From NCBI RefSeq assembly GCF_006345805.1, contig NC_043010.1:60636001-60700000 (forward strand): a DNA stretch of 64,000 nt. The letters are read 5' to 3'. This DNA is from Octopus sinensis (lineage: Eukaryota). Shown piece by piece: positions 1,661 through 54,125 of the stretch. Within the stretch, counting starts at the first letter, position 1. Every line of letters starts with the position of its first letter. Position numbers and translations under genes: made by a program. A model generated the notes under the pieces. That model had not been told where the DNA came from and did not search any database. It saw only the letters and a list, made by a program, of their open reading frames with translations.

Positions 1661-4060
1661 ATGACAGCATATATTGGTCTACTGTGTCTTCTACATTTAC
1701 TGATCACCCTTGTACTGTCCATAGATATTACATACCATGTCAAGGAAGAAGACAGTCCTCACACCTATATAGGAGACATTGCTGTTGACTCCAACTTATC
1801 ACACCCTCTCACACATCAACAACACACTCTCATTACATTTACACAACTACAAAGGACAGTCGAGAGTGGTTCTCACTTATTTAATGTCACCAACTCAGGA
1901 AAACTATACACTACTCAAACACTGGATGCTGAGTCTCTGTGTACATACAACAAGGAATGTTCCAGAATAGTTAAAGTAGCAGTGAGGAAAGGAAAGACAT
2001 TTTTAAAAATTCTTAAAATTAAAATATTAATAGAAGACATCAATGATCATTCACCAGAATTTCCAAAGAATGAAATCACAATTCAATTTTTGGAGAGAGA
2101 CTTTGAAGGTTCTAAAATACCCCTTCTAAATGCCATTGATAAAGACATTTCAATAAAGAATTCTCAAATTACATATGTGATTAAGAAAAGTAAGAGAGAA
2201 GTATTTGCACTCTCAATTGAAAAGCGGTATGATGGTGTTTTCATACCTACTCTGACTTTGAAAAGCAAATTAGACAGGGAAGTGAAAGACTCATATATGT
2301 TGACCCTGGAGGCTAAAGATGGAGGGTACCCTCCCAAAACAGCTACACTCAAAGTACACATATCTGTAACAGATGTCAATGATAACATACCTGTATTTTC
2401 ACAGAAATTCTATAACATCTCTATAAATAATTCACATCAAAGACATTTACCAATTCTTACTTTAAAAGCCACAGATCAAGATTCTGGAGACAATGGAAAG
2501 ATTTCTTATCATTTCAACCATAAAACATCCCAAAATATCCAGAAATATTTTGTATTAGATAAGAAAACTGGAGATTTATTTTTACACAATAATTTTCATT
2601 TTAGTAAAAAGCAATCTTATAAATTATTTATTGAAGCACAGGATGAAGGAAATCCACCCTTAAGTTCTGTAACCAAAGTCCAGATTCACATTATTAATAA
2701 CCAAAATACTGCTCCATTGATTAACATAGATTTTGTATCTCCTTTATCAGAGAGCTCAGCAGCAGTTTCAGAAGACAGTGAAGTAGATAGTTTTATAGCT
2801 TATGTTATGGTCACTGACAATGATAGTGGGCCTAATGGTGAGGTTATCTGTGATTTAAAACATGATAAATTTAAACTTGCCAAAATGGATTCTAAAGAAT
2901 ATAAAATGATTGTTAAAGGCCATCTTGACAGAGAAATAAGGGACCACTATAAAGTATCTATTGTGTGTCATGACATGGGGTCACCTCAACTAGAAAGTAA
3001 AAAATATTTCTCTGTCAAAGTAACTGATGTCAATGATGTAGAACCACATTTTACCAAAGAGACTTTCCAATTCCTCACATATGAAAACCAGAAAGTTGAC
3101 TTCCCTATTGGCTTCATCAATGCTACAGACCCTGATCTTGGAGATGGAGGCCAACTTACATATTCTATCATCAATGATAACAACAATGATAACATTCCTT
3201 TCCAACTGACAAAATATGGATTTATTTCTACATCACAACCAATAGATCGAGAAATGAAAGACATCTATAAGTTCAAGGTTTTAGTGAAAGATAATGGAAC
3301 ACCTTCTCTCAATGACACTGCCAATATTGTTATTGAGATTCTAGATAAAAATGATAATGCTCCGTATTTTACGTTTCCTAATAATGACCCTTACAATCTC
3401 GATGTCCACTACCATCCACACAGTAAGAAGGACATCACAATTCTGAGAGCATCTGACAAAGACACTGGAAACAATGCTTTCCTCACATATGGAATACTGA
3501 GATCCAATGATAAAAACCTGTTTACAGTGAACTCACACACTGGTGTGTTATCTTTCTCTCGCACAGTTTACCAAAATGATGCAGGAACATATGAGCTGCA
3601 GTTTATAGTGAAAGACGGTGGTACTCCAGTTCAATCAGCAACAACTGCTATCATACTAACACTGTTTGTTAGTAATGATACATCTCCAATGTTGACTGCT
3701 GTGCCATTCCAGTCTGGTCACGACCTGAATATGACTTGGGTAATTATCATTGTAGCAGCAGCTGTAATACTATCTGTGGCTATCGTAGTGTCCATAACAC
3801 TGTGTGTTTTCAGATGTATTAATCACACAAATAACTCACCCACAACAGCAGAGAATCCCAACTTTCTCTCTCAGACTGAGATGAGACAATTACTGTATCA
3901 GACTAACAATCCTGTTGCAATAACGAGAAATGCAGAAGAGATATTTAACCGAAATCTTCAGACAATAAAATCTAAAAGTCAGTTTTTTCTGGAGATGGAA
4001 CAGACACCAGATGAGTGGAAATTCTCAACAACACAAAGGAGACTTCCACCTGTGCCTCAG
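1661..4060 (+). CDS. Pcdh: Protocadherin C1, large ectodomain exon (signal peptide, EC1-EC6, TM, proximal cytoplasmic tail)
   Basis: Open 800 codons. Hydrophobic leader MTAYIGLLCLLHLLITLVLS; cadherin motifs DINDH, LDRE, DVNDN, ATDQD, DKNDNAP; EC1 C-X5-C (CTYNKEC); TM WVIIIVAAAVILSVAIVVSITLCVF. Phase-0 donor CAG|GTAAAT at 4060/4061; acceptor TTTTGTAG 38 nt upstream of ATG. Symbol is family level only. Confidence 0.97.
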
Positions 4061-4438
4061 GTAAATATATTTTGAAACAATCCAGTTGTTGCATCAAATT
4101 TCTTTACAATATTCCTGCAAACATATTTTATACATCGTGTTTATTTCCATGTTGTGTTCCATTCCTTATGTCTTTGTCATGAAACACAATGGCTTTTTCA
4201 TAATTTTACATTTTACAGAAGAAATAGACAGAATTACATGGACTTCATTAAACTTGTATCTTTGTCTTGTTTATTCTAAGTTTATTTTAATTAACCAAGA
4301 AAAAGTTTATTATAATCTTTCTGCTCATTTTAAATGCATTCCATTCTTGTGTCATACCAGGGACATTCTAGAATATAAATGCACGTGTTTCTTCTTTTTA
4401 ACATTATGCTTCACTCTGCTTTGTTTTCTAATCAACAG

Positions 4439-4827
4439 AGATGTGATTCAATCCATAGTCAAGGACGTCGCACCAGTTCCATCATGTCTTACAACAGTGA
4501 CACCTTAGCATCCCAAAAGGACAGAGAAGCTAGCAAGAGTAATGGCAAGACTAAACCATATGATGAGATACCTGCAGAACCAGGTAACTTTTATCAAAAC
4601 ATAACATATAAATGTAATTGCCTTTATTACTGTAGGACAATATATAATGTTATGCTTAGTGTAATATAAGATCAATGTTTCTATCTTTATATATTGGAGT
4701 TGTTATATTGAAATGTAATTTGTGTTTGTATATTTGATATTTTGCAGAATATACCAATGACAATCCAGTGGCAGCCACAATACTAAAGGGACAACAAATA
4801 CAAGATACCTATCTACAGCCAACATAG
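4439..4827 (+). CDS. Pcdh: C1 cytoplasmic exons 2 (4439-4583) and 3 (4748-4827)
   Basis: AATCAACAG|AGA..CCAG|GTAACT (145 nt, phase 0 to 1), then TTTTGCAG|AA..TAG TAG. Phases chain with exon 1, giving RCDSIHSQGRRTSSIMSYNSDTLASQKDREASKSNGKTKPYDEIPAEP-EYTNDNPVAATILKGQQIQDTYLQPT*. Predicted from splice signals, no transcript evidence. Confidence 0.82.
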
Positions 4828-5344
4828 TAGATGTTCCATGACTATTGTTAAATGATTCTCTCACACACCAAATCTTATACAATACTTTATATTCATATAC
4901 AAATATTAACTCTATGTTACTTTCACACATCACACGTAAAGGGCCTTACAGTGGCATCTACTATGACCCCTTTCTTACATCTCTGATACAATAAATACAA
5001 TAAAAACCTAACTTTATTATAACATAGTACATTATTATAAAAGCATTATTTTACTGTCAGTTGTAGTATAGATATTTCCTTAAGCATAAGTCTATTAATT
5101 TTAGCTTTCCTAAAATAGATTTAATTAATTTAGCTCTTGAATATTGAATTTGTAATGATCAAACATTTTCTATCTTCTCCCTGAAGTTCAGTCTGTTTTT
5201 CTTTTAGAAATTGCTCAATTGTCATCTCATATTAACTTATACAACTTGGATGAAACACAGAAATATAATTATTAATTATTTTAATAGAAGTTCCTTTTTA
5301 CTAAGACTAAATATATAATAAAGTCATACTACTAATTATACCCC

Positions 5345-5960
5345 TGTAAATTATCAAGCTGCTTCAGTGTAACATGAATTCTCTTATTTGCTATGTTTGT
5401 GTGACACAGACATCATTGCAGTCATTTCCTATTGGATGAGAGAGATTTTCTATATTTCTTTCAATATTGAAAGTGAGGCTGATAGCTTTTTTCTTTGTTC
5501 TTCACACACACAATTGTGTGTGTGGAGGACATAGAGTTGTAACTAGCACACACCAGCATCTGGCTAACATCTCACCTCCCACTACATACAGCAACTGTCA
5601 CACTATTATATCAGCAGTTACACAGGAACAGCAGCAGCAGCTGCAGTAACACAGGAACACTATTACAACAGCAGCAGTACCACTATAATACCACTACAGC
5701 AGCAGCAGCAGCAGTTGGAGTGGAACACTACAGCAGGATACACATCATCCATCACACACAACTACAGTGAAGGATTAAACAATGCAGGTAAGTCTCTCTC
5801 TCTCTCTTTCTCTTTATTATCTTTTCATATTCATTATAACATTTATATTATTTGTATTTCTAATGAAAGACAGGGTAAGGATAATATCTAAAATGTCTGC
5901 CATGTTGTATATATACAGGGACTGGGACAGTGGAGGATCGAGAGATCTAGCCATCACTTC
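5345..5960 (+). promoter_or_regulatory. Conserved block 1: putative promoter and non-coding first exon of C2 (donor GT at 5788)
   Basis: Near-identical in all 7 units. Contains CCTATTGG (reverse CCAAT) at ~5428-5435, a (GT)n tract, a CAG-rich segment, then AAACAATGCAG|GTAAGT and (CT)n. Function is inference. Confidence 0.55.
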
Positions 5961-6116
5961 CACCATTAACAACAACTACAGTAATACAATCACTTCAAAC
6001 TGCATTACGCTTTTTAATGTCAGAATCATACCAGACACATTATACAAGAAATATTAAATTATATATATTCCTATGTTATATTTTATATTAAATTTTGGTG
6101 TTGTATAGTCCAAATG

Positions 6117-6200
<84 letters not shown>

Positions 6201-6431
6201 TTGTCAGAAAACATCAATATCCAATAAGACTGGCTGTTAGTATAGTTTCTTTCTGTGTTGTTGTTATAATTCACTAATTTAACCTTAATCTTTATTTAGG
6301 TTTAATGAACTCTAACAGATTACAAATATACCTTTCTATATTCCCTGTTAAATATTCATTATATATGTCTATGTATACAAAAAAATTAAAAAGTTTTTTT
6401 ATTATTATTATTATAATTATTATTATTATTA

Positions 6432-6486
<55 letters not shown>
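6117..6486. repeat. (TA)n and (ATT)n microsatellites
   Basis: Direct reading: 6117-6200 and 6400-6486. Confidence 0.95.
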
Positions 6487-6489
<3 letters not shown>

Positions 6490-8374
6490 TTGACAATAAA
6501 TATAATGTAGTGTATATTTGTTATTTAAGATATATTGTGTGAGATATAAACTGATGATATTGTCGTGTGTTGTTAAGATATATTTATTCTGACAACAAGA
6601 GATGAATGTTGTAGATTTGTTGAGAATTCGTCAAGAATAGTATCATATTCTATGTACAAACTAATATACATTACATTATTATAGTTGTTATTTCATAACA
6701 AAACATTACAGAAATACATGTAGAAGTATAATATAAAACCTGCATATCATATCTAGCAAATAAGATTGAAAATATTTTTGTTTTGATGTATTCAATTTAA
6801 ACTTTCTATATATTACATGGAAATTATTATGGGTTCGTTTCTAGGGGTTTTTTTAACATCTAATATTTTATTATGTCTATCTTTCTTTTATTGTAAAATA
6901 TTTTTGTGCAATTTCATAAATTATTCTTTCATATTAATGTCACTGTGTTCATTTCAATATCAAAAAATGTATTATGAAAAATGTTTCCCACACCCTACAA
7001 CAAAGTACTTTAAGCTCTGTCAGTGTTTGAAATAATGAAACTAATCTCAGCTCTTTTAGAAAAATATTTCTTTCCTTCTTCAGATTCCAACCCACTCAAT
7101 ACTTTCTTTAACACAGAGCTTGGACCATATTATTAGTGCTCCATCCACTCTTGAACATTCACCATCTACCATTTTTTGTTCCCTATGCACATCTTTTCCT
7201 TTGATTTAGTGTTAGCAAAGAACTGGAACAATTTCTTTCACTCTGCGTCTTCTTCATATGCTATTAAACAGTCAGTATTGTTGACATTTTCAATGCAATT
7301 TTGTAAACACTAATGAACCATTCCTACTTCTTGTTCAGCTTTCATTATTATAATTTACATACATTACCACTCAGCTATGCTACTGATATATATATGGAGT
7401 GTTTCACTCAAAGGTCTAACAGACACACAGCTGTCAAATTATTTCTGAAGAGTAACTTTATATGTTAAAAGCAATATTTGGTCTGAGTTTTACACTACAA
7501 GAACCATCTTCTTTTTGCATTGGAACATGGCTGCGACCGTTTTAGACCAGTTTATTCCAATAAATGTAGAGAAACTAGTAGAAAGGGCTTGCTAGTGTTT
7601 ACAAGAGCACACCAAAATCTTATGCCCCTTTTAGCCCCACTGAAATAAGAGAAGGAGGCTGGTGCACTGATCTGGAAAGTATGCCAAATTTAGTGGTGGA
7701 ATTCAGTTACCTGTGGCCAGGTAACTGAAGGTAGACTATACTATTAAGAATTAACAGCTTCTTATGTATTTTAAATGGACACAAATTGCTCTTACACCAT
7801 GTAATAGTTTGTGTGTGTTTGTGTGTGATCTCTATTGGTCACCTTCTCACTACTCACTCTGCATTCACTCTTTCTTGTTCTCTGTGCTATGTCACCTGTG
7901 TTACAAGAGATGTTATTTGACTTACCTGTATCCATATACCCCTACCCCATCCTTATCCTGACATCTCTTGCCCATCATACAATGTATAAGGTATTATGTC
8001 ACACAATACATTCCACCATCATTCTTTTTGTACTGCCAGTCATTTGTCATCACTCTCTTTCCTCAGAACCACTTGTTATTGACATCTGTCACTCACCCTT
8101 ACCATTGTTCTCCTCTATTACCATCCATCACCCTCTCTCAACCTTCAATCACTCTTTTTCTTTTACTATCCTATCGTCCTCTTGCCGTTTGTGTTATGAT
8201 AGACATGACAACCTGCACAAGTGACTAGTGAATGAGTTAAGGCATTCAGCCATAAAACTGTATTTTAACTTCTAAAGACTGGGTTGCCCTCTTCAACCAC
8301 CTGGTCAGCATAAATATAACAGCATCTGTGCCAATCAGTGATTAAGAATGAACAGACTTTAATGTCTATTGTCC

Positions 8375-8635
8375 ATGCTGGCATGGCTTGGATGGTTTGA
8401 CTGAGTACTGGCAAACCAGATGGCTACACCAGGCTCTAATCTGATCTGGCAAGGTTTCTATAGCTGGATGCCCTTCCTAACGCCAACCACTCTGAGAGTG
8501 TAGAGGGTACTTTTTATGTGCCACCAACATGGGCCAATCATGTGGTTCTGGCATCGCCCACACTCAAATGGTGCTTTTTACATGCCACCAGCATATGTGC
8601 CAGTCTGGCGGCACTGGCAATGACCACACTTGAAT
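8375..8635 (-). mobile_element. RTE 3'-end fragment / RTE-tailed SINE
   Basis: CCATGCTGGCATGG..CTGGATGCCCTTCCTAACGCCAACCAC..ATGTGCCACC, matching 9340-9500. Confidence 0.75.
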
Positions 8636-8642
8636 GGTGCTT

Positions 8643-9015
<373 letters not shown>

Positions 9016-9315
9016 AAAATAAGAAAATGGAGAAATACATCGAAATCAAATATCAATTATCAGATAATACTCAATCACATACTTTATTAAACCACCACAT
9101 AAGAAACTATAAGGTTAAACATAATAATGCAGGGTAAAGCAGTGTACATGAAGGAGTGTACATAAAATAGTAATATTATACAATAAGTAGAATACGTATA
9201 ATAGAACATAAATATAAGTACACATAAATACAAATATAGCAGTATATTGGATATATGGTATCCCATGGTGGGTTGCATTTACAACCCCTATCTCAATTTG
9301 AAAATATATATATAT

Positions 9316-12300
9316 CATCATCATCATCATCATCATTTAGCGTCCGTTTTCCATGCTAGCATGGGTTGGACGGTTCAACTGGGGTCTGGGGAGCCCGAAG
9401 GCTGCACCAGGCCAGTCAGATCTGGCAGTGTTTCTACAGCTGGATGCCCTTCCTAACGCCAACCACTCCGAGAGTGTAGTGGGTGATTTATGTGCCACCG
9501 ACACAGGTGCCAGACGAGGCTGGCGAACGGCCACGCTCGGATGGTGTTTTTATGTGCCACCGACACAGGTGCCAGACGAGGCTGGCAGACGGCCACGCTC
9601 GGATGGTGTTTTATGTGCCACCGACACAGGTGCCAGATGAGGCTGGCGGACGGCCACGATCGGATGGTGTTTGTTACGTCCCCAAAGCACGGAGGCCAGT
9701 CTATGCGGTACTGGCTACGGCCACGTTCGGATGATTTTCTTGTGTGCCACCGGCACTGGTACCACAAAGATACAAATTCCATTTATGTTCATCTATTTTG
9801 ATTTGTTTTGATTTGATTTGATTTTCACTTGCCTCAACAGGTCTTCACAAGTGTCACAAGAAGGAAGGTATGCACAGGTGGACTGACTACGTCGCCGGGT
9901 CTTCGGATGGTGTCTTTATGTGCCACCGACACAGGTGCCAGATGTGGCTGGCGAACAGCCACGATCGGATGGTTTTCTTGTGTGCCACCGGTACTGGAAC
10001 CACAAAGATACAAATTCCATTGATGTTCATCTATTTTGATTTGGTTTGATTTTCACTTGCCTCAACAGGTCTTCACAAGTGTCACGCGTGTCACACACTT
10101 GCCTCAACAGGTCTCCACAAGTGTCACACACTTGCCTCTGCCTCAACAGGTCTTCACAAAGTGTCACACACTTGCCTCTGCCTCAACAGGTCTTCACAAG
10201 TGTCATAAGAGGGAAGGTATGCACAGGTGGACTGACTACGTCGCCGGGTCTTTGGATGGTGTTTTTATGTGCCACCGACACAGGTGCCAGGTGAGGCTGG
10301 CGAACGGCCACGATCAGATGGTGTTTGTTGTGCCCACAGCACGGAGGCCAGTCGATGCGGTACCAGCTACGGCCACGTTCGGATGGTTTTCTTGTGTGCC
10401 ACCGGTACTGGAACCACAAAGATACAAATTCCATTGATATTCATCTATTTTGATTTGGTTTGATTTCCACTTGCCTCAACAGGTCTTCACAAGGGTCACA
10501 CACTTGCCTCAACAGGTCTTCACAAGTGTCATAAGAGGGAAGGTATGCACAGGTGGACTGACTACATCGCCGGGTCTTCGGATGGTGTCTTTATGTGCCA
10601 CCGACACAGGTGCCAGACGAGGCTGGCAGACGGCCACGCTCGGATGGTGTTTTTATGTGCCACCGACACAGGTGCCAGATGAGGCTGGCGGACGGCCACG
10701 ATCGGATGGTGTTTGTTACGTCCCCAAAGCACGGAGGCCAGTCTATGCGGTACTGGCTACGGCCACGTTCGGATGATTTTCTTGTGTGCCACCGGCACTG
10801 GTACCACAAAGATACAAATTCCATTTATGTTCATCTATTTTGATTTGTTTTGATTTGATTTGATTTTCACTTGCCTCAACAGGTCTTCACAAGTGTCACA
10901 AGAAGGAAGGTATGCACAGGTGGACTGACTACGTCGCCGGGTCTTCGGATGGTGTCTTTATGTGCCACCGACACAGGTGCCAGATGTGGCTGGCGAACAG
11001 CCACGATCGGATGGTTTTCTTGTGTGCCACCGGTACTGGAACCACAAAGATACAAATTCCATTGATGTTCATCTATTTTGATTTGGTTTGATTTTCACTT
11101 GCCTCAACAGGTCTTCACAAGTGTCACGCGTGTCACACACTTGCCTCAACAGGTCTCCACAAGTGTCACACACTTGCCTCTGCCTCAACAGGTCTTCACA
11201 AAGTGTCACACACTTGCCTCTGCCTCAACAGGTCTTCACAAGTGTCATAAGAGGGAAGGTATGCACAGGTGGACTGACTACGTCGCCGGGTCTTTGGATG
11301 GTGTTTTTATGTGCCACCGACACAGGTGCCAGGTGAGGCTGGCGAACGGCCACGATCAGATGGTGTTTGTTGTGCCCACAGCACGGAGGCCAGTCGATGC
11401 GGTACCAGCTACGGCCACGTTCGGATGGTTTTCTTGTGTGCCACCGGTACTGGAACCACAAAGATACAAATTCCATTGATATTCATCTATTTTGATTTGG
11501 TTGGGTCACACACTTGCCTCAACAGGTCTCCACAAGTGTCACACACTTGCCTCTGCCTCAACAGGTCTTCACAAGTGTCACACACTTGCCTCAACAGGTC
11601 TTCACAAGTGTCATAAGAGGGAAGGTATGCACAGGTGGACTGACTACATCGCCGGGTCTTTGGATGGTGTCTTTATGTGCCAGATGAGGCTGGCGAACGG
11701 CCACGATCGGATGGTGTTTGTTGTGCCCACAGCACGGAGGCCAGCCGATGCGGTACTGGTTACGGCCACGTTTGAGTGGTTTTCTTGTGTGCCACCGGCA
11801 CTGGTACCACAAAGAATACAATTCCACTGATGTTCATCTATTTTGATTTGTTTTGATTTGATTTGATTTCACTTGCCTCAACAGGTCTTCATAAGTGTCA
11901 CAAGAAGGAAGGTATGCACAGGACTGACTACGTCCCAGGTCGGGGCCACGGGTTATGGCCTGACTAGTCTTGCCGGGTCTTCTCATGCACAGCATACTTC
12001 CATAGGTCTCGGTCTCTAGACATTTCCTTAGTGAGACCTAAAGTTCGAAGGTCGTGCTTCACCACCTCGTCCCAGGTTTTCCTGGGTCTACCTCTTCCAC
12101 AGGTTCCCTCCACTGCTAGGGTGTAGCACTTTTGCACACAACTATCTTCAGCCTTTCTTGTCACATGACCATACCAGCGCAGCCGTCTCTCTTGCACGCC
12201 ACAACTGACGCTTCTTAGGTTCAACTTTTCTCTCAAGGAACTTACACTCTGACGATTATGAACACTGACATTACACATCCATCGGAGCATACTGGCTTCA

Positions 12301-15033
12301 TTTCTTGCGAGCTTACGCATATCCTCAGCAGTCACGGCCCATGTTTCACTACCATGTAGCATGGCTGTACGTACACATGCATCATACAGTCTGCCTTTTA
12401 CTCTGAGCGAGAGGCCTTTTGTCACCAGCAGGGGTAAGAGCTCTCTAAACTTTGCCCAGGCTATTCTTACTCTAGCAGTTACACTTTCAGCACACCCACC
12501 CCCGCTACTGACTTGGTCTCCTAGGTAGCGGAAGCTATCAACTACTTCTAGTTGTCTCCCTGGAACGTGGCAGAAGTTGGTCTCTGCATATTTCCAGTGT
12601 TTATTGCTCCTGAGCATTTGCCACAGACAAAAACTATTTTCCTAGTTAGCCTTCCTTTGACATTGCTGCACCTCTTATGTGTCCATAGCTTACACTTGGT
12701 GCATCTTATAGAGTTTCTACCTACACCTTTTTACAGATCGAGCAGGGCCATCTACCTGAAGGCGTTTGTGATTGATCTACCTTCCTACTTATTAGGACTT
12801 TGGTTTTGGCTAGGTTGATTCTAAGGCCCTTCGATTCTAATCCTTGTTTCCACACCTGAAACTTCTCCTCCAGTTCTGATAGTGACTCAGCAATTAGAGC
12901 AAGGTCATCAGCATAGAGGAGCTCCCAGGGGCAACCTGTCTTGAATTCCTCCGTTATTGCCTGGAGGACTATGATAAATAGGAGGGGACTGAGGACTGAA
13001 CCTTGGTGGACCCCAACCTCTACCCGGAATTCTTCACTGTACTCGTTGCCAACCCTCACCTTACTAGCAGCGTCTCTGTACATGGCTTGCACAGCTCTCA
13101 CCAACCATTCTTCTATCCCTAGTTTCCTCATTGACCACCAGATAAGGGACCGGGGGACCCTGTCAAAGGCTTTCTCCAAGTCAACAAAAGCCAGGTACAA
13201 GGGCTTATCTTTGGCTAGGTATTTCTCCTGCAGCTGTCTTACCAGGAATATAGCATCAGTAGTACTTTTCCCTGGCACGAACCCAAACTGCATATCATCT
13301 AAGGTAACTCTCTCTCTAATTAGTTGGGCTACAACCCTCTCCGTAACCTTCATTACCTGATCCAGCAGCTTGATGCCCCTGTAGTTATTTGTCTCTAGGG
13401 CGTCGCCTTTACCTTTGTAGCAGTTGACTATTATGCTGCTACACCAGTCATTGGGTATGACCCCCTCGTGTATCACCTGGTTAACTATACGGGTGACTAA
13501 GCTATAGCCGACACCACCAGATATTTTGAGCATCTCTGCAGTAATTCCTGATGGGCCTGGGGCTTTCCCTGTTTTCATGCTTCTAATTGCCTTATCTACT
13601 AAGGAACTGTTAACTCGGATTGCTGGTCCCTCTGTTGGGTCGACATTCGGCAGACTCTCTTTATCCCATTCATTTTCTTCATTCAGCAACCTATCATAGT
13701 GGCGTCTCCAAGCCTCTCTCTTTGCACCCTCATTAAGTGCAAGTGAACCGTCCTCCTTGCGAACACATTTCTCTCCTACCACGTCACGATTCTCTCTCAC
13801 ACACTGTCTTGCAACACGAAATACCTCAAGTCTTTCATCCTCACGACGCAGGACATTGGCAAATTTTTCCTTCTCTGCTTCCCCTCTGGCTAGATAGACC
13901 TGTCTCCTGGCTTCCCTTCTGGCAGACTGATACACTTCCCTGCTACCACCGTTCTTCCAGGCCTTCCAAGCCTGTTTCTTTTGTCTAATAGCCCTGTCAA
14001 CAATATTGTTCCACCACCACGTTATTTTGGGTCTTAAGGGGACTTTGCACCAGCCACAGATCTGGTCAGCGGCTTTCAGCAGGTTGTCCCTGAGAAGCGT
14101 CCTGTTGTCTTCTACCCCATGCGTAGCTATACTCCCTTCCATTTCGTCTAAGGCTTCAAATAACATATCTCTAAATCTCTGTCCATTCGCAGGGTCTTTA
14201 AGCTTCCAGACCCTTCTTCTCCATGTTGGTCGTCTTCTAGTCGCCCTCTTAGTCCTGATCCTAAAGTCACTAACTACCAGTCTATGTTGTGGGGTGCATT
14301 CTTCACCTGGGAAGGTTTTGGCATTTATAAGCAGCCATCTTTCCCTTTTTCTGGCAAGGATGTAGTCGATTTGGCTAGTATGCCGGCCCGATCGGTAGGT
14401 GACCAGGTGGCTTGTCGGTTTCCTGAAGTTAGTGTTGCAAATCATAAGACTATTCGCATCGCAGAACTCCAGCAGCCTGGTTCCCTCCTCGTTGCGGGAA
14501 CCATAACCGTAGCCTCCATGCACGCCATGGAAGCCCCCAGCACATCGTCCAACATGCCCATTGAAGTCACCAGCCACAAAGAGAAGGTCCCTGTCGTTCG
14601 TCAATGATGTGGTCTGCAGTAGGGTGTCATAGAAACAGTCTTTCTGTCCATCAGGTAGCCCTGGCTGAGGGGCATAGGCCGATATAATAGTTGCTAAACT
14701 ATGGTGGAGCACTAATCTAATCTTAATTATTCTGTCACTTACTCTGACTACCTCGATTACCTTATCTACCCATTTTTCGGCGATAAGCATGCCCACACCC
14801 CCGACTCCGTCAGTATTCCCAGCCCAGAAAATCTTGTACCTCTGTCCTTTGCCTGTGAGGAACCTAGCAGAACCTCCTCTCCACCTCACTTCTTGAATGC
14901 AGCATATATCAACCCACCTCCGTTCAAGCAATTCAACTATCTCGCCAGATCTGCCTTTCAGTGTGCCGACGTTGAGGGTGCCAACCCTGAGGCTGTGGGT
15001 GGGGGTGGAAGTGGTATTGGTCCTAATAGCGTC
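9316..15033 (-). mobile_element. Near full-length RTE-clade non-LTR retrotransposon (APE endonuclease + reverse transcriptase), 5' end missing, two 1-nt frameshifts
   Basis: ORF 12721-15084 has APE motifs (GTLNVGTL, CIQEVRW, SAYAPQ, GDFNGHVG, QIDYIL) and RT motifs (QFGF, FVDLEKAFDRV, GVHQGSVLSP, YADD). It continues after frameshifts (~12730, ~12553) into ORF 11964-12617. Repeat-expanded 3' UTR ends in (GAT)n at 9316-9336; (TA)n on both flanks. Confidence 0.95.
9480..11900. repeat. Nested tandem repeats in the RTE 3' UTR including a 1042-bp-period duplication
   Basis: Identical ORF-track peptides at offset 1042 (9829/10871, 10036/11078, 10183/11225); subunits ATGTGCCACCGACACAGGTGCCAG and CACTTGCCTCAACAGGTCTTCACAAGTGTCA. 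Confidence 0.9.
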
Positions 15034-15078
15034 ATATATATATATATATGAATGTGTGTGTATATATACATTATATAC

Positions 15079-15472
15079 ATACAAGGTGGTGTTAAATAGT
15101 TCCTGGACTAATTTTGTTGTGCAAAATGGCAGTATACAGTTGCATGTGCAGTGAGAGCTAGCAGTGACCTTTATGAGGCTGTGTAGTGAGTAACATAACT
15201 GGGTTTACTTCACAAGTTGTTAAATTTGTGTTTTTGTGATCACATGTTTGCAGTAGTCTGTGATTTTTTCATAGTCAGGAAGTTGGAACAAAAAAACTGT
15301 TGTGAAATTTTGCATTAAACTTAGGAAGTCTACTACAGAGACATTGAGCATGCTTCTGCAATCTTATGGCAATGAGGCAATGGGTTATATGCAATATTTC
15401 AAGTCACACAAGTACTTTAAAAGTGGAAGAACATCCCTGAAAGACAATGAACAATCTGGAAGACTTGCCACT
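15079..15472 (+). mobile_element. Tc1/mariner transposon 5' relic
   Basis: ~15305-15470 reads KFCIKLRKSTTETLSMLLQSYGNEAMG..FKSGRTSLKDNEQSGRL, resembling the mariner transposase N-terminal HTH region. Confidence 0.65.
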
Positions 15473-15586
15473 TTTATATGAAGTATATGAAGTATATCTG
15501 AATGATAAATAATGAGACATGTTGACAATTCAATTCAGGCTGTTTTATTCTGTAGAGATAAGTCTACCCATTAATGATTGTCACAT

Positions 15587-16805
15587 TTCCAGGGAGAAAA
15601 ACTAGAAATAGTTGATAGTTTCCGTTACCTAGGTGACCAAGTCAGCAGCGGGGGCGGGTGTGCTGAAAGTGTAACTGCTAGAGTAAGAATAGCTTGGGCA
15701 AAGTTCAGAGAGCTCTTACCTCTGCTGGTGACAAAAGGCCTCTCGCACAGAGTGAAAGGCAGACTGTATGATGCGTGTGTACGAACAGCCATGCTACATG
15801 GCAGTGAAACATGGGCCGTGACTGCTGAGGATATGCGTAAGCTCGCTAGAAATGAAGCCAGTATGCTCCGATGGATGTGTAATGCCGGTACTCACACTCG
15901 GCAGAGTGTAAGTACCTTGAAAGAAAAGCTGGACCTAAGAAGCATCAGTTGTGGTGTGCAAGAGAGACGTTTGCGCTGGTATGGTCATGTGGCGAGAATG
16001 GATGAAGATAGTTGTGTGAAAAAGTGCCACACCCTAGCGGTTGAGGGAACCTGTGGAAGAGGCAGACCCAGGAAAACCTGGGACGAGGTGGTGAAGCACG
16101 ACCTTCGAACTTTAGGTCTCACTGAGGAAATGACTAGAGACCGAGACCTCTGGAAGTGTGCTGTGCGCGAGAAGACCCGGCAGGACAAGTGAGTCCATAA
16201 CCCGTGGCCTTCTACATGGGATGGAGCCAGCCTACGTATGCATACCTTCCCTTCTTGGGACACAAAACTCTACTTGTGAAGACGTGTTGAGGCAAGTGAG
16301 GATCAGAATCGAAATCGATCAATGGAAATTGCGGATGTGCTACCAGTGCCGGTGGCATGTCGAAACTCTGCTTGTGAAGACCCGTTGAGGCAAGTGAGGA
16401 TCAGAATCGAAATCGATCAATGGAAATCGATCAATGGAAATTGCAGATGTGTTACCAGTGCCGGTGGCATGTAAGAGAACTTTCCGTTTCGCGACCGTTG
16501 CCAGCACCGCCCCGTTTCGTGTCCATTGCCAGCCTCGCCTGGCCCTCGTGCCGGTGGCACATAAAAAGCACCATCCGTTCGTGGCCGTTTGCCAGCTCTG
16601 TCTGGCACCAGTGAGGGTGGCACGTAAAAAGCACCCACTACACTCACGGAGTGGTTGGCGTTAGGAAGGGCATCCAGCCATAGAAACACTGCCAGATTTG
16701 ACTGGGCCTGATGAAGCCTTCTGGCTTCACAGACCCCAGTAGAACCGTCCAACCCATGCTAGCATGGAAAACGGACGCTAAACGATGATGATGATGATGA
16801 TGATG
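15587..16805 (+). mobile_element. 5'-truncated RTE LINE of the same family
   Basis: ORF 15578-16192 is ~90% identical in aa to 11964-12590. 3' UTR ends in (GAT)n; flanked by ACAT at 15583-15586 and 16806-16809. Confidence 0.92.
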
Positions 16806-16984
16806 ACATCAGGAAAAGAGAGTTATTAAATTGTACAGTGCGATGTAACATAGAATATCTACAAATGTATGTGTATATAACATGAACCCATTTGTTATTA
16901 TTTCTATAAGTTATTTTACTTTCTATTTTCCTCTTTTCTTTTGTAGAAATTTCTCCTGCTAAAGTGTGATGAAGAATTCCAGAC

Positions 16985-20809: not shown

Positions 20810-21420
20810 GTGTAAAGTGATTTCTCTTGATGTGTTTGTGTGACACAGACATCATTGCAGTAATTTCCTATTGGATGAGAGAGATTTTCTATATTTCTTT
20901 CAATATTGAAAGTGAGGCTGATAGCTTTTTTCTTTGTTCATCATACACACAATTGTGTGTGTGTGTGGAGGACATAGAGTTGTAACTAGCACACACCAGC
21001 ATCTGGCTAACATCTCACCTCCCACTACATACAGCAACTGTCACACTATTATATCAGCAGTTACACAGGAACAGCAGCAGCAGCTGCAGTAACACAGGAA
21101 CACTACTACAACAGCAGCAGTACCACTATAATACCACTACAGCAGCAGCAGCAGTTGGAGTGGAACACTACAGCAGGATACACATCATCCATCACACACA
21201 ACTACAGTGAAGGATTAAACAATGCAGGTAAGTCTCTCTCTCTCCCTCTCTCTCTCTCTTTATTATCTTTTCATATTCATTATAACATTTATATTATTTG
21301 TGTTTCTAATGAAAGACAGGGTAAGGATAATATCTAAAACGTCTGCCATGTTGTATATATACAGGGACTGGGACAGTGGAGGATCGAGAGATCTAGCCAT
21401 CACTTCCACCATTAACAATA
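20810..21420 (+). promoter_or_regulatory. Conserved block 2 (donor GT at 21228), putative promoter/first exon of C3
   Basis: Paralog of block 1. Confidence 0.55.
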
Positions 21421-23513: not shown

Positions 23514-23625
23514 GTGTATAACATTCACGTGTCTCTTATTATTTCTATAAGTTATTTTACTTTCAATACTGCTGTTGTCTTTTGTAGCAATTTCTCCTGC
23601 TGAAATGTGATGAAGAATTCCAGAC

Positions 23626-26018
23626 ATGACAGCATATATTGGTCTACTGTGTCTTCTACATTTACTGATCACCCTTGTACTGTCCATAGATATTACATAC
23701 CATGTCAAGGAAGAAGGCAGACCTCACACCTATATAGGAGACATTGCTGTTGACTCCAACTTATCACACCCTCTCACACATCAACAACACACTCTCATTA
23801 CATTTACACAACTACAAAGGACAGTCGAGAGTGGTTCTCACTTATTTAATGTCACCAACTCAGGAAAACTCTACACTACTCAAACACTGGATGCTGAGTC
23901 TCTGTGTACATACAACAAGGAATGTTCCAGAATAGTTAAAGTAGCAGTGAGGAAAGGAAAAACTTTTATGAAGATTCTAAAGATAAAAATATTCATAGAA
24001 GATGTCAATGACCATTCACCAGAATTTCCAAAGAATGAAGTTAAAATTGAATTTCTTGAAAGAGATAGAAAAGGAGATAAAATCCCACTTCTAAATGCTA
24101 TAGATCAAGATATTTCAATAAAGAATTCTCAAATTACTTATATGATCAAGAAAAGTAAAAGAGAACCATTTTCTCTCTCAATCAAAATAAGACATGATGG
24201 TGTCTCCATACCTGAATTAATATTGGAAGATAAATTGGACAGGGAACTCAAAGACAAATATATATTGACCTTGGAAGCTAAAGATGGAGGGAACCCTCCC
24301 AAAACAGCTACACTCAAGGTACATGTATCTGTTATAGATGTCAATGATAACACACCTGTATTTTCTCAGAAACTCTACAACATCTCTGTAAGTAATTCAC
24401 ATCAAAGACATTTACCAATTCTTACTTTAAAAGCCACAGATCAAGATTCAGGAGACAATGGAAAGATTTCTTATCATTTCAACCATAAAACATCTCGAAA
24501 TATCCAGAAATATTTTGTATTAAATAAGAAAACAGGTGATTTATTTTTACATGATAATTTTCATTTCAGTAAAAAACAGTCTTATAAATTATTTATAGAA
24601 GCACAGGATGATGGAAATTCACCCTTAACTTCTGTAACCAAAGTCCAGATTCTCATTATTAATAACCAGAATAGTGCTCCATTGATAAATATAGATTTTG
24701 TATCTCCTTTATCAGAGAGTTCCACAGCAGTTTCAGAAGACAGTGAAGTAGATAGTTTTATAGCTTATGTTATGGTCACTGACAATGATAGTGGACCTAA
24801 TGGTGAGGTTATCTGTGATTTAAAACATGATAAATTAAACTTGCCAAAATAGATTCTAAAGAATATAAAATGATTGTTAAGGGCCCTCTTGACAGAGAAA
24901 TAAGGGACCACTATAAAGCATCTATTGTGTGTCATGACATGGGGTCACCTCAACTAGAAAGTAAAAAATATTTCTCAGTCAAAGTAACTGATGTCAATGA
25001 TGTAGAACCACATTTCACCAAAGAGACATTCCAATTCCTCACCTATGAAAACCAGAAAGTTGACTTCCCTATTGGCTTCATCAATGCTACAGACCCTGAT
25101 CTTGGAGATGGAGGCCAACTTACATATTCTATCATCAATGATAACAACAATAACATTCCTTTCCAACTGACAAAATATGGATTTATTTCTACATCACAAT
25201 CAATAGATCGAGAAATGAAAGACATCTATAAGTTCAAGGTTTTAGTGAAAGATAATGGAACACCTTCTCTCAATGACACTGCCAATATTGTTATTGAGAT
25301 TCTAGATAAAAATGATAATGCTCCGTATTTTACGTTTCCTAATAATGACCCTTACAATCTAGATGTCCACTACCATCCACACAGTAAGAAGGACATCACA
25401 ATTCTGAGAGCATCTGACAAAGACACTGGAAACAATGCTTTCCTCACATATGGAATACTGAGATCCAATGATAAAACCTGTTTACAGTGAACTCACACAC
25501 TGGTGTGTTATCTTTCTCTCGCACAGTTTACCAAAATGATGCAGGAACATATGAGCTGCAGTTTATAGTGAAAGACGGTGGTACTCCAGTTCAATCAGCA
25601 ACAACTGCTATCATACTAACACTGTTTGTTAGTAATGATACATCTCCAATGTTGACTGCTGTGCCATTCCAGTCTGGTCACGACTTGAATATGACTTGGG
25701 TAATATCATTGTAGCAGCAGCTGTAATACTATCTGTGGCTATTGTAGTGTCCATAACACTGTGTGTTTTCAGATGTATTAATCACACAAATAACTCACCC
25801 ACACAGCAGAGAATCCCAACTTTCTCTCTCAGACTGAGATGAGACAATTACTGTATCAGACTAACAATCCTGTTGCAATAACGAGAAATGCAGAAGAGAT
25901 ATTTAACCGAAATCTTCAGACAATAAAATCTAAAAGTCAGTTTTTTCTGGAGATGGAACAGACACCAGATGAGTGGAAATTCTCAACAACACAAAGGAGA
26001 CTTCCACCTGTGCCTCAG
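23626..26018 (+). CDS. Pcdh: Protocadherin C3, large exon, frameshifted as assembled (pseudogene or consensus errors)
   Basis: ORF pieces 23626-24852, 24870-25490, 25487-25714 and 25839-26042 tile one full paralog. 1-nt deletions near 24835, 25474, 25704, 25804 and an in-frame 3-nt deletion near 25150; no nonsense substitutions seen; donor at 26018/26019. Confidence 0.85.
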
Positions 26019-27109: not shown

Positions 27110-27770
27110 CCTGTAAATTATCAAGCTGCGTCAGTGTAACATGAATTCTCTTATTTGATGTGTTTGTGTGACACAGACCACATTGCAGTAATTTCCTATT
27201 GGATGAGAGAGATTTTCTATATTTCTTTCAATATTGAAAGTGAGGCTGATAGCTTTTTTCTTTGTTCATCATACACACAATTGTGTGTGTGTGTGTGTGT
27301 GTGTGGAGGACATAGAGTTGTAACTAGCACACACCAGCATCTGGCTAACATCTCACCTCCCACTACATACAGCAACTGTCACACTATTATATCAGCAGTT
27401 ACACAGGAACAGCAGCAGCAGCTGCAGTAACACAGGAACACTACTACAACAGCAGCAGTACCACTATAATACCACTACAGCAGCAGTAGCAGCAGTTAGA
27501 GTGGAACACTACAGCAGGATACACATCATCCATCACACACAACTACAGTAAAGGATTAAACAATGCAGGTAAGTCTCCCTCTCTCTCCCTCTCTCTCTCT
27601 CTCTTTATTATCTTTTCATATTCATTATAACATTTATATTATTTGTGTTTCTAGTGAAAGACAGGGTAAGGATAATATCTAAAATGTCTGCCATGTTGTA
27701 TATATACAGGGACTGGGACAGTGGAGGATAGAGAGGATCTAGCCATCACTTCCACCATTAACAACAAGAA
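27110..27770 (+). promoter_or_regulatory. Conserved block 3 (donor GT at 27569), putative promoter/first exon of C4
   Basis: Paralog of block 1; TAG at 27487 interrupts the otherwise open frame. Confidence 0.55.
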
Positions 27771-33056: not shown

Positions 33057-33180
33057 ATATATATATATAACGTTTACACATAGGCTATTATTTCATGAAG
33101 TAATTTTACATAGACTTTCAATATTCCTCTTTTCTTTTGTAGCAATTTCTCCTGCTAAAGTGTGATGAAGAATTCCAGAC

Positions 33181-35576
33181 ATGACAGCATATATTGGTCT
33201 ACTGTGTCTTCTACATTTACTGATCACCCTTGTACTGTCCATAGATATTACATACCATGTCAAGGAAGAAGACAGACCTCACACCTATATAGGGGACATT
33301 GCTGTTGACTCCAACTTATCACACCCTCTCACACATCAACAACACACTCTCATTACATTTACACAACTACAAAGGACAGTCGAGAGTGGTTCTCACTTAT
33401 TTAATGTCACCAACTCAGGAAAACTATATACTACTCAAACACTGGATGCTGAGTCTCTGTGTACATACAACAAGGAATGTTCCAGAATAGTTAAAGTAGC
33501 AGTGAGGAAAGGAAAAACTTTTATGAAAATTCTTAAAATAAAAATATTGATACAGGATATCAATGACCATTCACCAGAATTTCCACAGAATGAAGTTGAA
33601 ATTGAATTTCTAGAAAGAGATACTAAAGGAGATAAAATAACCCTTCCAAATGCCATTGATGAAGATATTTCAACAAAGAATTCCCAAATTACATATATGA
33701 TAAACAAAAGTAGGAGAGAACCATTTTCTCTCTCTGTCACAAAACAGGATGGTATTTTCATACCTACTCTGACTTTGCAAGAAAAATTAGACAGGGAAGT
33801 ACAAGACTCATATATGTTAACCCTGGAAGCTAAAGATGGAGGGAACCCTCCCAAAACAGCTACACTCAAGGTACACATATCTGTTATAGATGTCAATGAT
33901 AATACACCTGTATTTTCTCAGAAACACTACAACATCTCTGTAAGTAATTCACATCAAAGACATTTACCAATTCTTACTTTAAAAGCCACAGATAAAGATT
34001 CTGGAGACAATGGAAAGATTTCTTACCATTTCAACCATAAAACATCTCGAAATGTCCAGAAATATTTTGTAATAAATAAGAACACCGGAGATTTATTTTT
34101 ACATGACAATTTTCATTTTAGTAAAAAGCAGTCTTATAAGTTATTTATAGAAGCTAGAGATGGAGGAAATCCACCTTTAAAATCAGTCACAAAAGTCCAG
34201 ATTTACCTTATTAATAACCAAAATACTGCTCCATTGATAAACATAGATTTCGTATCTCCTTTATCAGAGAGTTCAGCAGCAGTTTCTGAAGACAGTGAAG
34301 TAGATAGTTTTATAGCTTATGTTATGGTCACTGACAATGATAGTGGACCTAATGGTGAGGTTATCTGTGATTTAAAACATGATAAATTTAAACTTGCCAA
34401 AATAGATTCTAAAGAATATAAAATGATTGTTAAGGGCCCTCTTGACAGAGAAATAAGGGACCACTATAAAGTATCTATTGTGTGTCATGACATGGGGTCA
34501 CCTCAACTAGAAGGTAAAAAATATTTCTCTGTCAAAGTAACTGATGTCAATGATGTAGAACCACATTTCACCAAAGAGACATTCCAATTCCTCACCTATG
34601 AAAACCAGAAAGTTGACTTCCCTATTGGCTTCATCAATGCTACAGACCCTGATCTTGGAGATGGAGGCCAACTTACATATTCTATCATCAATGATAACAA
34701 CAATGATAACATTCCTTTCCAACTGACCAAATATGGATTTATTTCTACATCACAACCAATAGATCGAGAAATGAAAGACATCTATAAGTTCAAGGTTTTA
34801 GTGAAAGATAATGGAACACCTTCTCTCAATGACACTGCCAATATTGTTATTGAGATTCTAGATAAAAATGATAATGCTCCGTATTTTACGTTTCCTAATA
34901 ATGACCCTTACAATCTCGATGTCCACTACCATCCACACAGTAAGAAGGACATCACAATTCTGAGAGCATCTGACAAAGACACTGGAAACAATGCTTTCCT
35001 CACATATGGAATACTGAGATCCAATGATAAAAACCTGTTTACTGTGAACTCACACACTGGTGTGTTATCTTTCTCTCGCACAGTTTACCAAAATGATGCA
35101 GGAACATATGAGCTGCAGTTATAGTGAAAGACGGTGGTACTCCAGTTCAATCAGCAACAACTGCTATCATACTAACACTGTTTGTTAGTAATGATACATC
35201 TCCAATGTTGACTGCTGTGCCATTCCAGTCTGGTCACGACCTGAATATGACTTGGGTAATTATCATTGTAGCAGCAGCTGTAATACTATCTGTGGCTATT
35301 GTAGTGTCAATAACACTGTGTGTTTTCAGATGTATTAATCACACAAATAACTCACCCACAACAGCAGAGAATCCCAACTTTCTCTCTCAGACTGAGATGA
35401 GACAATTACTGTATCAGACTAACAATCCTGTTGCAATAACGAGAAATGCAGAAGAGATATTTAACCGAAATCTTCAGACAATAAAATCTAAAAGTCAGTT
35501 TTTTCTGGAGATGGAACAGACACCAGATGAGTGGAAATTCTCAACAACACAAAGGAGACTTCCACCTGTGCCTCAG
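33181..35576 (+). CDS. Pcdh: Protocadherin C4, large exon, one frameshift as assembled
   Basis: ORFs 33181-35124 and 35124-35600 join across CAGTTATAG versus CAGTTTATAG (1-nt deletion at ~35119); 3-nt deletion in EC2; donor 35576/35577. Confidence 0.9.
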
Positions 35577-36689: not shown

Positions 36690-37330
36690 ATCCCTGTAAA
36701 TTATCAATCTGCGTCAGTGTAACATGAATTCTCTTATTTGATGTGTTTGTGTGACACAGACATCATTGCAGTAATTTCCTATTGGATGAGAGAGATTTTC
36801 TATATTTCTTTCAATATTGAAAGTGAGGCTGATAGCTTTTTTCTTTGTTCATCATACACACAATTGTGTGTGTGTGTGTGTGTGTGGAGGACATAGAGTT
36901 GTAACTAGCACACACCAGCATCTGGCTAACATCTCACCTCCCACTACATACAGCAACTGTCACACTATTATATCAGCAGTTACACAGGAACAGCAGCAGC
37001 AGTAACGCAGGAACACTACTACAACAGCAGCAGTACCACTATAATACCACTACAGCAGCAGCAGCAGCAGTTGGAGTGGAACACTACAGCAGGATACACA
37101 TCATCCATCACACACAACTACAGTAAAGGATTAAACAATGCAGGTAAGTCTCCCTCTCTCACTCTCTCTCTTTATTATCTTTTCATATTCATTATAACAT
37201 TTATATTATTTGTGTTTCTAGTGAAAGACAAGGTAAGGATAATATCTAAAATGTCTGCCATGTTGTATATATACAGGGACTGGGACAGTGGAGGATCGAG
37301 AGATCTAGCCATCACTTCCACCATTAACAA
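36690..37330 (+). promoter_or_regulatory. Conserved block 4 (donor GT at 37144), putative promoter/first exon of C5
   Basis: Paralog of block 1. Confidence 0.55.
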
Positions 37331-40480: not shown

Positions 40481-40696
40481 TCCCATTTTTTTCCCATTTT
40501 TTCTCTAGACATATATTCCATTACAGATTGGCACATCAGAAATATCATTTTTAATTCTTCAGTGAGTATTTAGAGATGGAAATTATATTTGTGCACTGGT
40601 TATTAAAATTTATCATATTTTCATTTTTTAGACATAAAATATTTCTTTTCTTTTGTAGAAATATCTCCTGCTAAAGTGTGATGAAGAATTCCAGAC

Positions 40697-44609: not shown

Positions 44610-45245
44610 TGAAGTTGCTTCTGTTTAACATGAATTCTGTTGTTTGATGTGTTTGTGTGACACAGACAACATTGCAGTAATTTCCTATTGGATGAGAGAG
44701 ATTTTCTATATTTCTTTCAATATTGAAAGTGAGGCTGATAGCTTTTTTCTTTGTTCATCATACACACAATTGGGTGTGTGTGTGTGTGGAGGACATAGAG
44801 TTGTAACTAGCACACACCAGCATCTGGCTAACATCTCACCTCCCACTACATACAGCAACTGTCACACTATTATATCAGCAGTTACACAGGAACAGCAGCA
44901 GCAGCAGCAGTAACACAGGAACACTACTACAACAGCAGCAGTACCACTATAATACCACTACAGCAGCAGCAGCAGCAGTTGGAGTGGAACACTACAGCAG
45001 GATACACATCATCCATCACACACAACTACAGTGAAGGATTAAACAATGCAGGTAAGTCTCTCTCTCTCTCTCTCTCTTTCTCTTTATTATCTTTTCATAT
45101 TCATTATAACATTTATATTATTTGTGTTTCTAGTGAAAGACAGGGTAAGGATAATATCTAAAATGTCTGCCATGTTGTATATATACAGGGACTGGGACAG
45201 TGGAGGATCGAGAGATCTAGCCATCACTTCCACCATTAACAACAA
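44610..45245 (+). promoter_or_regulatory. Conserved block 5 (donor GT at 45052), putative promoter/first exon of C6
   Basis: Paralog of block 1. Confidence 0.55.
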
Positions 45246-53489: not shown

Positions 53490-54125
53490 TATGAAGTTGC
53501 TTCTGTGTAACATGACTTCTCTTGTTTGATGTGTTTGTGTGACACAGACATCATTGCAGTAATTTCCTATTGGATGAGAGAGATTTTCTATATTTCTTTC
53601 AATATTGAAAGTGAGGCTGATAGCTTTTTTCTTTGTTCATCATACACACAATTGGGTGTGTGTGTGTGGAGGACATAGAGTTGTAACTAGCACACACCAG
53701 CATCTGGCTAACATCTCACCTCCCACTACATACAGCAACTGTCACACTATTATATCAGCAGTTACACAGGAACAGCAGCAGCAGCAGCTGCAGTAACACA
53801 GGAACACTACTACAACAGCAGCAGTATACCACTAGAATACCACTACAGCAGTAGCAGCAGCAGTTGGAGTGGAACACTACAGCAGGATACACATCATCCA
53901 TCACACACAACTACAGTGAAGGATTAAACAATGCAGGTAAGTCTCCCTCTCTCTCTCTCTTTCTTTATTATCCTTTCATATTCATTATAACATTTATATT
54001 ATTTGAGTTTCTAATGAAAGACAGGGTAAGGATAATATCTAAAATGTCTGCCATGTTATATATATACAGGGACTGGGACAGTGGAGGATCGAGAGATCTA
54101 GCCATCACTTCCACCATTAACAACA
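53490..54125 (+). promoter_or_regulatory. Conserved block 6 (donor GT at 53937), putative promoter/first exon of C7
   Basis: Paralog of block 1; 2-nt insertion near 53827 and TAG at 53852. Confidence 0.55.

Follow-up and report, generated by a model that had tools for sequence, protein, structure and literature searches.

A conserved block behind each gene of an octopus protocadherin array as the probable promoter and untranslated first exon of the gene that follows

The window analysed here, a stretch of 64,000 nucleotides of Octopus sinensis (CM016872.1:60,636,001-60,700,000), contains a head-to-tail array of protocadherin (PCDH) genes, behind each of which there recurs a conserved block typified by positions 5345-5960; this block is probably the promoter and the 5'-untranslated (5'-UTR) exon of the gene that follows. 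Positions are those of the window unless another locus is named. Octopods have about 170 protocadherin genes, a family that expanded independently of that of vertebrates. The longest reading frame (1661-4075) specifies a protocadherin with a signal peptide, cadherin repeats and a transmembrane helix. The database proteins closest to it carry the name "protocadherin beta-15-like" and come from Octopus sinensis, O. vulgaris and Argonauta hians, and gene 1 corresponds exactly to the O. sinensis model XP_029645448.2 (P0128). The array of this subfamily extends beyond the window in both directions, covering at least 60.50 to 60.73 Mb.

Gene 1, on the plus strand, was delimited by tblastn and by an exact rebuild of its public model. 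The main exon runs from an acceptor at 1622/1623, 38 nt before the ATG, to 4060 (CAG/GTAAAT), and is followed by a second coding exon (4439-4583) and a third (4748-4827) that ends with the stop codon TAG at 4825-4827. Annotated proteins continue beyond the long frame (...PPVPQ/RCDSIHSQ...YLQPT). All seven genes carry private copies of both small 3' coding exons, so there are no shared constant exons. The region 4439-4827, comprising these two exons and the intron between them, shows 97-100% identity among the paralogues.

A blastn search with 5345-5960 against the window returned seven plus-strand matches (at 5345, 20788, 27112, 36695, 44605, 53487 and 61219), the copies being 93-95% identical with microsatellite gaps counted (E = 0). 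The seven near-identical copies that the earlier note had reported past each stop codon are thereby recovered, the true distance from the stop codon at the end of the third coding exon to the block being 518-831 nt. The conserved cores, all on the plus strand, lie at 5395-5972 (block 1, between genes 1 and 2), 20834-21418 (block 2), 27162-27764 (block 3), 36745-37330 (block 4), 44651-45242 (block 5), 53533-54123 (block 6) and 61269-61859 (block 7, which would serve gene 8, whose main exon lies past the window end in locus L001). At block 1 the copies diverge by 1-3% in the core against 17-46% in the flanks. Mean pairwise divergence among the seven copies is 1.0-2.9% inside the block, 17.5-34% just 5' of the core (5116-5391), 30-40% past 5971 and 46% in the first coding intron. 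The contrast between interior and flanks marks the block as a sharply bounded island, not merely a part of a recent duplication. Its extent had been given as 5345 to a splice donor; the GTAAGT donor is present in all copies, but strong conservation begins only at about 5395 and continues some 185 nt beyond the donor into the putative intron, up to 5972. Polyadenylation signals are found 28-160 nt upstream of each block, near chance expectation in such AT-rich DNA. Long (TA)n microsatellites occur a few hundred nucleotides past five of the seven blocks (6118-6200, 27834, 37666, 45657 and 61971), the one after block 1 marking the point at which unit-to-unit homology stops.

Several features can be recognised within block 1. 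A reverse CCAAT box (CCTATTGG, 5428-5435, minus strand) is present in all seven window copies, in keeping with the invariance claimed for it previously, and its ATTGG is retained in two of three copies from Argonauta. Island I3 (TCAATATTGAAAGTGAGGCTGATAGC, 5461-5486, plus strand), which includes a GATA-type core, is identical in all O. sinensis copies compared and matches Argonauta at about 85%; each gene unit has it once, and the loci of other subfamilies lack it. It is followed by an inverted microsatellite, (CA)n-AATT-(TG)n, at 5499-5527, the length of which differs between copies, and by the putative non-coding exon 0 (provisionally 5528-5787, plus strand), whose 3' end is the donor at 5787/5788. 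In all seven copies the exon terminates as AACAATGCAG/GTAAGT, the 5' splice site occupying 5788-5793 on the plus strand; the GTAAGT is retained in O. bimaculoides and in Argonauta (AATGCAA/GTAAGT). An AT-rich island, I10 (5815-5854, plus strand), begins 28 nt after the donor, within intron 0. When Octopus is compared with Argonauta, no part of the block is better conserved than the interval 5815-5858 (about 90% identity).

The presumed partner of the donor lies in front of the next gene. All seven main exons possess a (Y)nTAG acceptor exactly 38 nt before the ATG, just as the earlier note had stated, and the same spacing held for each of the canonical genes inspected, namely 10 of O. sinensis, 7 of O. 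bimaculoides and 3 of Argonauta. The position is held even where the leader has diverged, as in an O. sinensis gene of the P0002 type with a different leader and signal peptide sequence. In other subfamilies the acceptor stands 22-55 nt before the ATG, which makes a 5' non-coding exon the rule in this family. One subfamily of 73% identity (locus L008) retains the last ~100 nt of exon 0 together with the donor, GGATTAAACAATGAAG/GTAAGT. The 38-nt leader of gene 1 occupies 1623-1660 (acceptor 1622/1623) and that of gene 2, the partner of the block 1 donor, 16947-16984, giving an intron 0 of 11,159 nt. The remaining leaders, likewise on the plus strand, are at 23588-23625 (gene 3; intron 0 of 2,360 nt from block 2), 33143-33180 (gene 4; 5,574 nt from block 3), 40659-40696 (gene 5; 3,515 nt from block 4), 48314-48351 (gene 6; 3,262 nt from block 5) and 57410-57447 (gene 7; 3,473 nt from block 6). 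These spacers of 2.4-11.2 kb are rich in transposons, which agrees with the introns of 2-11 kb filled with transposable elements that had been envisaged.

The junction 5787 to 16947, predicted in the earlier note from the letters alone, was found in the NCBI model XP_029645448.2. This protein is the exact translation of 1661-4060, 4439-4583, 4748-4826, 5618-5787 and 16947-16969, and the exactness of the rebuild demonstrates that the join is present in the public model. The 11-kb intron adds just seven codons to it and presumably rests on read evidence. There were no Logan transcript-assembly members in the protein cluster listings, and no raw transcript contig was recovered.

Joining the two sites also creates a short reading frame. 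An ATG close to the end of exon 0 (5782-5784, plus strand) together with the leader opens an upstream reading frame of 15 codons, whose TGA overlaps the main ATG (ATGA). This frame exists only when the block donor is joined to the acceptor at -38, and it is intact across the junction in all 20 canonical genes of the three species. Taken alone, its integrity is modest evidence, a stop-free run of 12 codons being not rare. The leader holds additional upstream ATGs.

Several NCBI models fuse neighbouring genes by way of the block. XP_029645448.2 enters block 1 at 5618 from a donor inside the stop codon (ATA/GTAGAT). Block 2 is joined by XP_036365294.1 (P0147) at the position that corresponds to 5592, and from there this model continues at an internal acceptor past the signal peptide; in other places it includes an 11-nt micro-exon, TGAAAGACAGG, for which an AG acceptor exists only in blocks 3-5 (27655-27665, 37222-37232 and 45134-45144). 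The micro-exon bridge occurs in an O. bimaculoides model as well. The internal acceptors used by such chimeric models of both O. sinensis and O. bimaculoides lie just past the signal peptide (1723/1724, 17047/17048 and equivalents), and the Gnomon exon sequence within the block amounts to 5618-5787 and the equivalent of 5592-5787. A junction between the preceding gene and the block, which the earlier note would have counted against its own reading, is thus present in predicted chimeras, but it is made at weak or non-conserved sites, the joins are inconsistent and the frame is not conserved. We read these joins as by-products of a promoter that lies almost on top of the 3' end of the previous gene. 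In O. vulgaris, models P0137 and P0142 join the second coding exon to an internal acceptor (...DINDHSPEFP) in the main exon of the next gene, and many models begin at an internal methionine (MKILRIKIL...); these oddities suggest a systematic mis-annotation of the array.

Both XP_029645448.2 and XP_036365294.1 translate the block as a tail, and it might on that account be an alternative 3' coding exon of the preceding gene (5592 or 5618 to 5787) which specifies a Gln/Ala-rich C-terminus. Copies 1, 2, 4, 5 and 7 keep the long frame open, and a stop-free frame exists in most copies of all three species. Open frames of this kind are expected by chance from the T-poor CAG/CAC/CTA repeat composition. 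The frame breaks previously described are real: copy 3 has an in-frame TAG, and copy 6 a 2-nt TA insertion that shifts the long frame and is followed by a stop. Modulo 3, the spacing of islands I6 and I8 is 0 in O. sinensis, 1 in Argonauta and 2 in each of the six O. bimaculoides copies; shifts that are not multiples of three also affect the stretch from I8 to the donor, and the CAG repeats of the Octopus block are replaced by CTA repeats in Argonauta. The 345 nt ahead of the terminal upstream ATG, moreover, contain no start codon. Proteins of the normal form end in ...YLQPT, as seen in the Argonauta model P0005 and in four O. sinensis models of intact single genes. A search with the translated peptide of the CAG-rich tail matched no cluster representative, which is uninformative in that the sole model with the peptide is inside a 90% cluster. 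Judged from these sequence comparisons, in which the defects of copies 3 and 6 and the unconserved island phase across three species bear out the non-coding status first proposed, the block does not encode protein; a C-terminal tail is largely refuted and must be considered very improbable.

The near-identity of the copies within a species was compared with that of the coding exons. At third codon positions the seven main exons diverge by 1.6% over nt 1-300, by 13-27% over nt 301-1200, a region that corresponds to the end of EC1 to EC3, and by 0.6-4% over nt 1201-2400. Since near-neutral sites are homogenised like the block, its near-identity within the species would be mainly the work of gene conversion, which is the best explanation of these patterns, and not of a need for identical promoters. 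The earlier note had regarded near-identical promoters as what a stochastic promoter-choice system requires; this argument falls, because the synonymous sites of the coding exon are equally homogenised and carry the signature of conversion.

Function is evident from the comparison between species. Octopus and Argonauta hians belong to different families, and their alignment is restricted to the exons and the block, the flanks being unalignable. The block is about 70% identical overall, with islands at 5461-5498 and 5594-5632 (85% each), 5723-5787 (82%) and 5815-5858 (90%) that are comparable to the coding exon (85-87%). Such conservation beside unalignable flanks shows that the block is under purifying selection. 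Between O. sinensis and O. bimaculoides the blocks are mostly 2-5% different, as against 12-20% for nearby orthologous intergenic DNA. A block with no function of its own, carried passively with the adjacent exons by gene conversion or recent duplication, would account for the similarity of synonymous sites in the homogenised parts of the coding exon, where they differ as little (0.6-2.6%) as the block does, and for the small intron that separates the two 3' coding exons, which is also 97% identical. Conversion within a species cannot, however, produce 70% identity to Argonauta (82-90% in the islands) next to flanks that do not align, nor would a passenger diverge between the two Octopus species 3-6 times less than neighbouring intergenic DNA. 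A copy that has been split by an insertion, described below, drifts at the background rate. The passenger explanation is therefore hardly credible.

One block per gene unit, in the orientation of the gene, was found in the window, in the O. sinensis loci L001, L002 and L007, and in the Argonauta locus L003. Full copies number six in O. bimaculoides and three in Argonauta hians; O. bimaculoides locus L009 has in addition block fragments and one minus-strand copy beside an inverted gene fragment. A transposable element or dispersed repeat was considered and rejected, given the single copy per unit in the gene's orientation and the lack of copies at other loci. The exception to one copy per unit in O. 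sinensis is a split, decayed copy after gene P0001. An insert of ~6.5 kb divides this block, and both pieces drift at the background rate; they lie at 13487-13520 and 20198-20944 of L001 and, in the orthologous O. bimaculoides copy, at 96047-96196 and 100662-101261 of L009. What remains of the split block is a fragment of the promoter plus a degenerate exon portion whose donor has become AAG/GTCAGT; in O. bimaculoides a gene with a different leader follows it. The idea that P0001 is an array end without a block was discarded, in view of the split degenerate block 7 kb downstream and, in O. bimaculoides, the further gene after it.

These results make it probable, and well above an even chance, that the block is the promoter and 5'-UTR exon of the next protocadherin gene. 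Transcription would start inside the block, a placement that we infer from the conserved upstream 140 bp with its reverse CCAAT box, from a zone free of ATG that spans 345 nt (-352 to -6 before the donor; P=0.0035 against shuffles) and from the need of each gene for a start of its own. The 140 bp upstream of the ATG-free zone are as conserved as the exon. On this proposal the block would have three parts: a proximal promoter of ~140 bp (5395-5527) with the reverse CCAAT box, the TCAATATTGAAAGTGAGGCTGATAGC island and the CA/TG inverted microsatellite; an untranslated first exon of ~200-260 nt that ends at the donor 5787/5788; and ~185 nt of conserved proximal intron. The conserved upstream islands would bind transcription factors. 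Splicing would carry exon 0 across the transposon-filled intron (2.4-11.2 kb) to the large exon, whose acceptor stands 38 nt before the ATG, and the 15-codon upstream reading frame, if it is used, probably tunes translation through its TGA overlapping the main start. With its own two small 3' exons, each gene would be a complete transcription unit. Gene conversion would homogenise the block, the 3' exons and, within the coding exon, the 5' 300 nt and the 3' half. Just 0.5-0.8 kb would separate the stop codon of gene N from the promoter of gene N+1, a proximity that would explain the read-through fusion transcripts and the chimeric gene models. No description of octopus protocadherin promoters or 5' exons was found in the literature searched.

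Certain observations weigh against this assignment. The sole visible transcript-level support is the Gnomon model, itself a read-through chimera. Neither a TATA box nor a clear initiator was found in the block, and one Argonauta copy has lost the reverse CCAAT box. Between genera, conservation is strongest in the intron part (5815-5858), which the promoter model does not explain, and neither does that model predict that the distance to the upstream stop is tight (0.5-0.8 kb) and that to the downstream exon loose. Finally, the acceptor sequence at 5617/5618 is conserved in Argonauta, so the block may sometimes act as an internal exon; the AG at 5591/5592 is absent there.

The last point, and the position of the block tightly behind the previous gene, would also be accommodated if the block were an internal non-coding exon of multi-gene read-through transcripts, lacking a promoter, with transcription starting further upstream at the promoter of the previous gene or at one distal promoter. 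The Gnomon chimeras, and those of O. bimaculoides likewise, enter the block from the last exon of the preceding gene, and Styfhals et al. 2022 reported that read-through transcripts gave PCDH gene fusions in O. vulgaris, which were curated out of the annotation (PMC9712504). We consider this unlikely, since the downstream protocadherin frame in a fused mRNA would not be translated and each gene would still need its own start. The entry joins moreover vary from model to model (5618, the 5592 equivalent or the 11-nt micro-exon), and they employ the weak ATA/GTAGAT donor and weak or unconserved acceptors. Nor does an internal exon need the 140 bp before the ATG-free zone, conserved as they are to the same degree as the exon.

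The location of the best-conserved island past the donor, the extension of conservation for 185 nt into the intron and the lack of coding function would be compatible with a separate regulatory or RNA element, such as an intergenic enhancer or insulator, an antisense promoter or a small non-coding RNA gene, to which the donor is incidental. No Rfam match came near any gathering score, and over 540 columns the consensus fold reaches a weak -22 kcal/mol, with a covariation term of -2.3. A CTCF-like pattern (CCASYAGRKGGCRS, up to two mismatches) was matched twice in the window and never in the blocks, 3.4 matches being expected by chance; this was a consensus scan, not one with a full weight matrix, and within that scope it upholds the statement that the block has no CGCT/CTCF-type motif. 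A separate element also leaves the strict donor, the acceptor at -38 and the junction-spanning upstream reading frame unaccounted for. As a replacement for the promoter and first exon it is improbable, though it may well be true in addition to them. The islands of the block are absent from the loci of four other subfamilies (L004, L005, L006 and L008); being confined to one subfamily, they do not constitute a family-wide element like the conserved sequence element (CSE) of vertebrates.

Understood as a promoter and an untranslated first exon, the block is most likely ordinary gene anatomy that has been unusually well preserved, and its parts can be compared with known systems. Tandem receptor genes, for example those for olfactory receptors, have a short untranslated first exon, a long repeat-rich intron and an acceptor tens of nucleotides before the ATG. 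The octopus genes resemble them in having an untranslated first exon spliced to an acceptor near the ATG of one large coding exon, and differ in the unusually high identity of the paralogues and in the conservation of the module across octopod families. Upstream reading frames whose stop overlaps the main start (ATGA) are read by termination-reinitiation. The 15-codon octopus frame has the same arrangement, with a TGA overlapping the main ATG and a leader fixed at 38 nt in three species; unlike the usual cases, its start codon is in another exon, so that the frame exists only after splicing.

Vertebrate protocadherin clusters undergo concerted evolution through gene conversion. Similarly, the 5' end and the 3' half of the octopus large exon are homogenised and EC1-EC3 diverged, and the putative promoter is homogenised too; the octopod expansion is independent, however, and the conversion tracts span a separate 5' exon module and private 3' exons. 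As in the vertebrate clusters, each tandem member would have its own highly similar promoter region, and the large exon specifies the ectodomain and the transmembrane helix, with the central ectodomain variable and the rest homogenised. The vertebrate promoter element sits close to the ATG at a constant distance, inside a single 5' exon, and binds CTCF (review PMC7811963). In the octopus the putative promoter is split from the ATG by a non-coding exon and an intron of 2.4-11.2 kb, the block is without a CTCF-like motif and limited to one subfamily, and the private 3' exons of each gene replace shared constant exons. The clustered Dscam genes of chelicerates have alternative promoters (cited in PMC6339937); their variable 5' cassettes share constant 3' exons. 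They and the octopus array would be alike as invertebrate tandem arrays of recognition receptors with a promoter for each unit; every octopus gene, unlike those cassettes, is complete.

By analogy with vertebrate promoter choice, the cassette might be an independently evolved octopod counterpart, in which identical promoters would vie for an activator or a chromatin state in limited supply, each neuron would activate a subset of the array, and the 5815-5858 element and read-through between neighbours would take part. We regard this as speculative and rather unlikely. In a single-cell study ~19 PCDH genes were expressed in each cell, part of them broadly and part in specific cell types (PMC9712504), a result that is compatible with stochastic choice but is no evidence for it. 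In a related scenario, the splice sites of the block might allow regulated splicing between neighbouring genes. The analysis defines the likely 5' ends of one octopus protocadherin array, with exact junctions that can be sought by RNA-seq, and supplies a footprint of candidate regulatory islands that holds across families. Both promoter choice and a control of translation by the upstream frame thereby become directly testable, and the fusion of array genes into giant chimeric models by automatic annotation would be explained.

A number of minor observations were made on the genes and on the repeats of the array. Relative to intact paralogues, genes 3, 4 and 7 (23626-26017, 33181-35575 and 57448-59840) show several 1-nt gaps, and the last exon of gene 2 lacks 1 nt, near 19901; these genes are either pseudogenes or affected by long-read assembly errors. 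An analogous block was sought in the subfamily of 73% identity, where the repeated segment proved to be a dispersed repeat, only the donor end of exon 0 being homologous. The dispersed repeat TTTAACGTTCGTTTTCCATGCTGGCATGGGTTGGACGG... occurs in the intergenic DNA of this neighbouring subfamily (locus L008 8796-9096, 17096-17396 and 22417-22615) and is probably a SINE-like element. Intron 0 of gene 2 contains, on the minus strand at 12721-15084, the reading frame of a long interspersed nuclear element (LINE) with endonuclease and reverse transcriptase domains (RVT_1, E = 5e-32; Exo_endo_phos, E = 9e-7). This antisense frame is flanked by an inverted duplication of ~650 nt (11855-12500 and 15653-16316; 89% identity). 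The same intron carries at 9487-11941 a kilobase-scale tandem duplication, its halves (9537-10943 and 10578-11941) being 92% identical, within which repeats of ~190 nt are nested.

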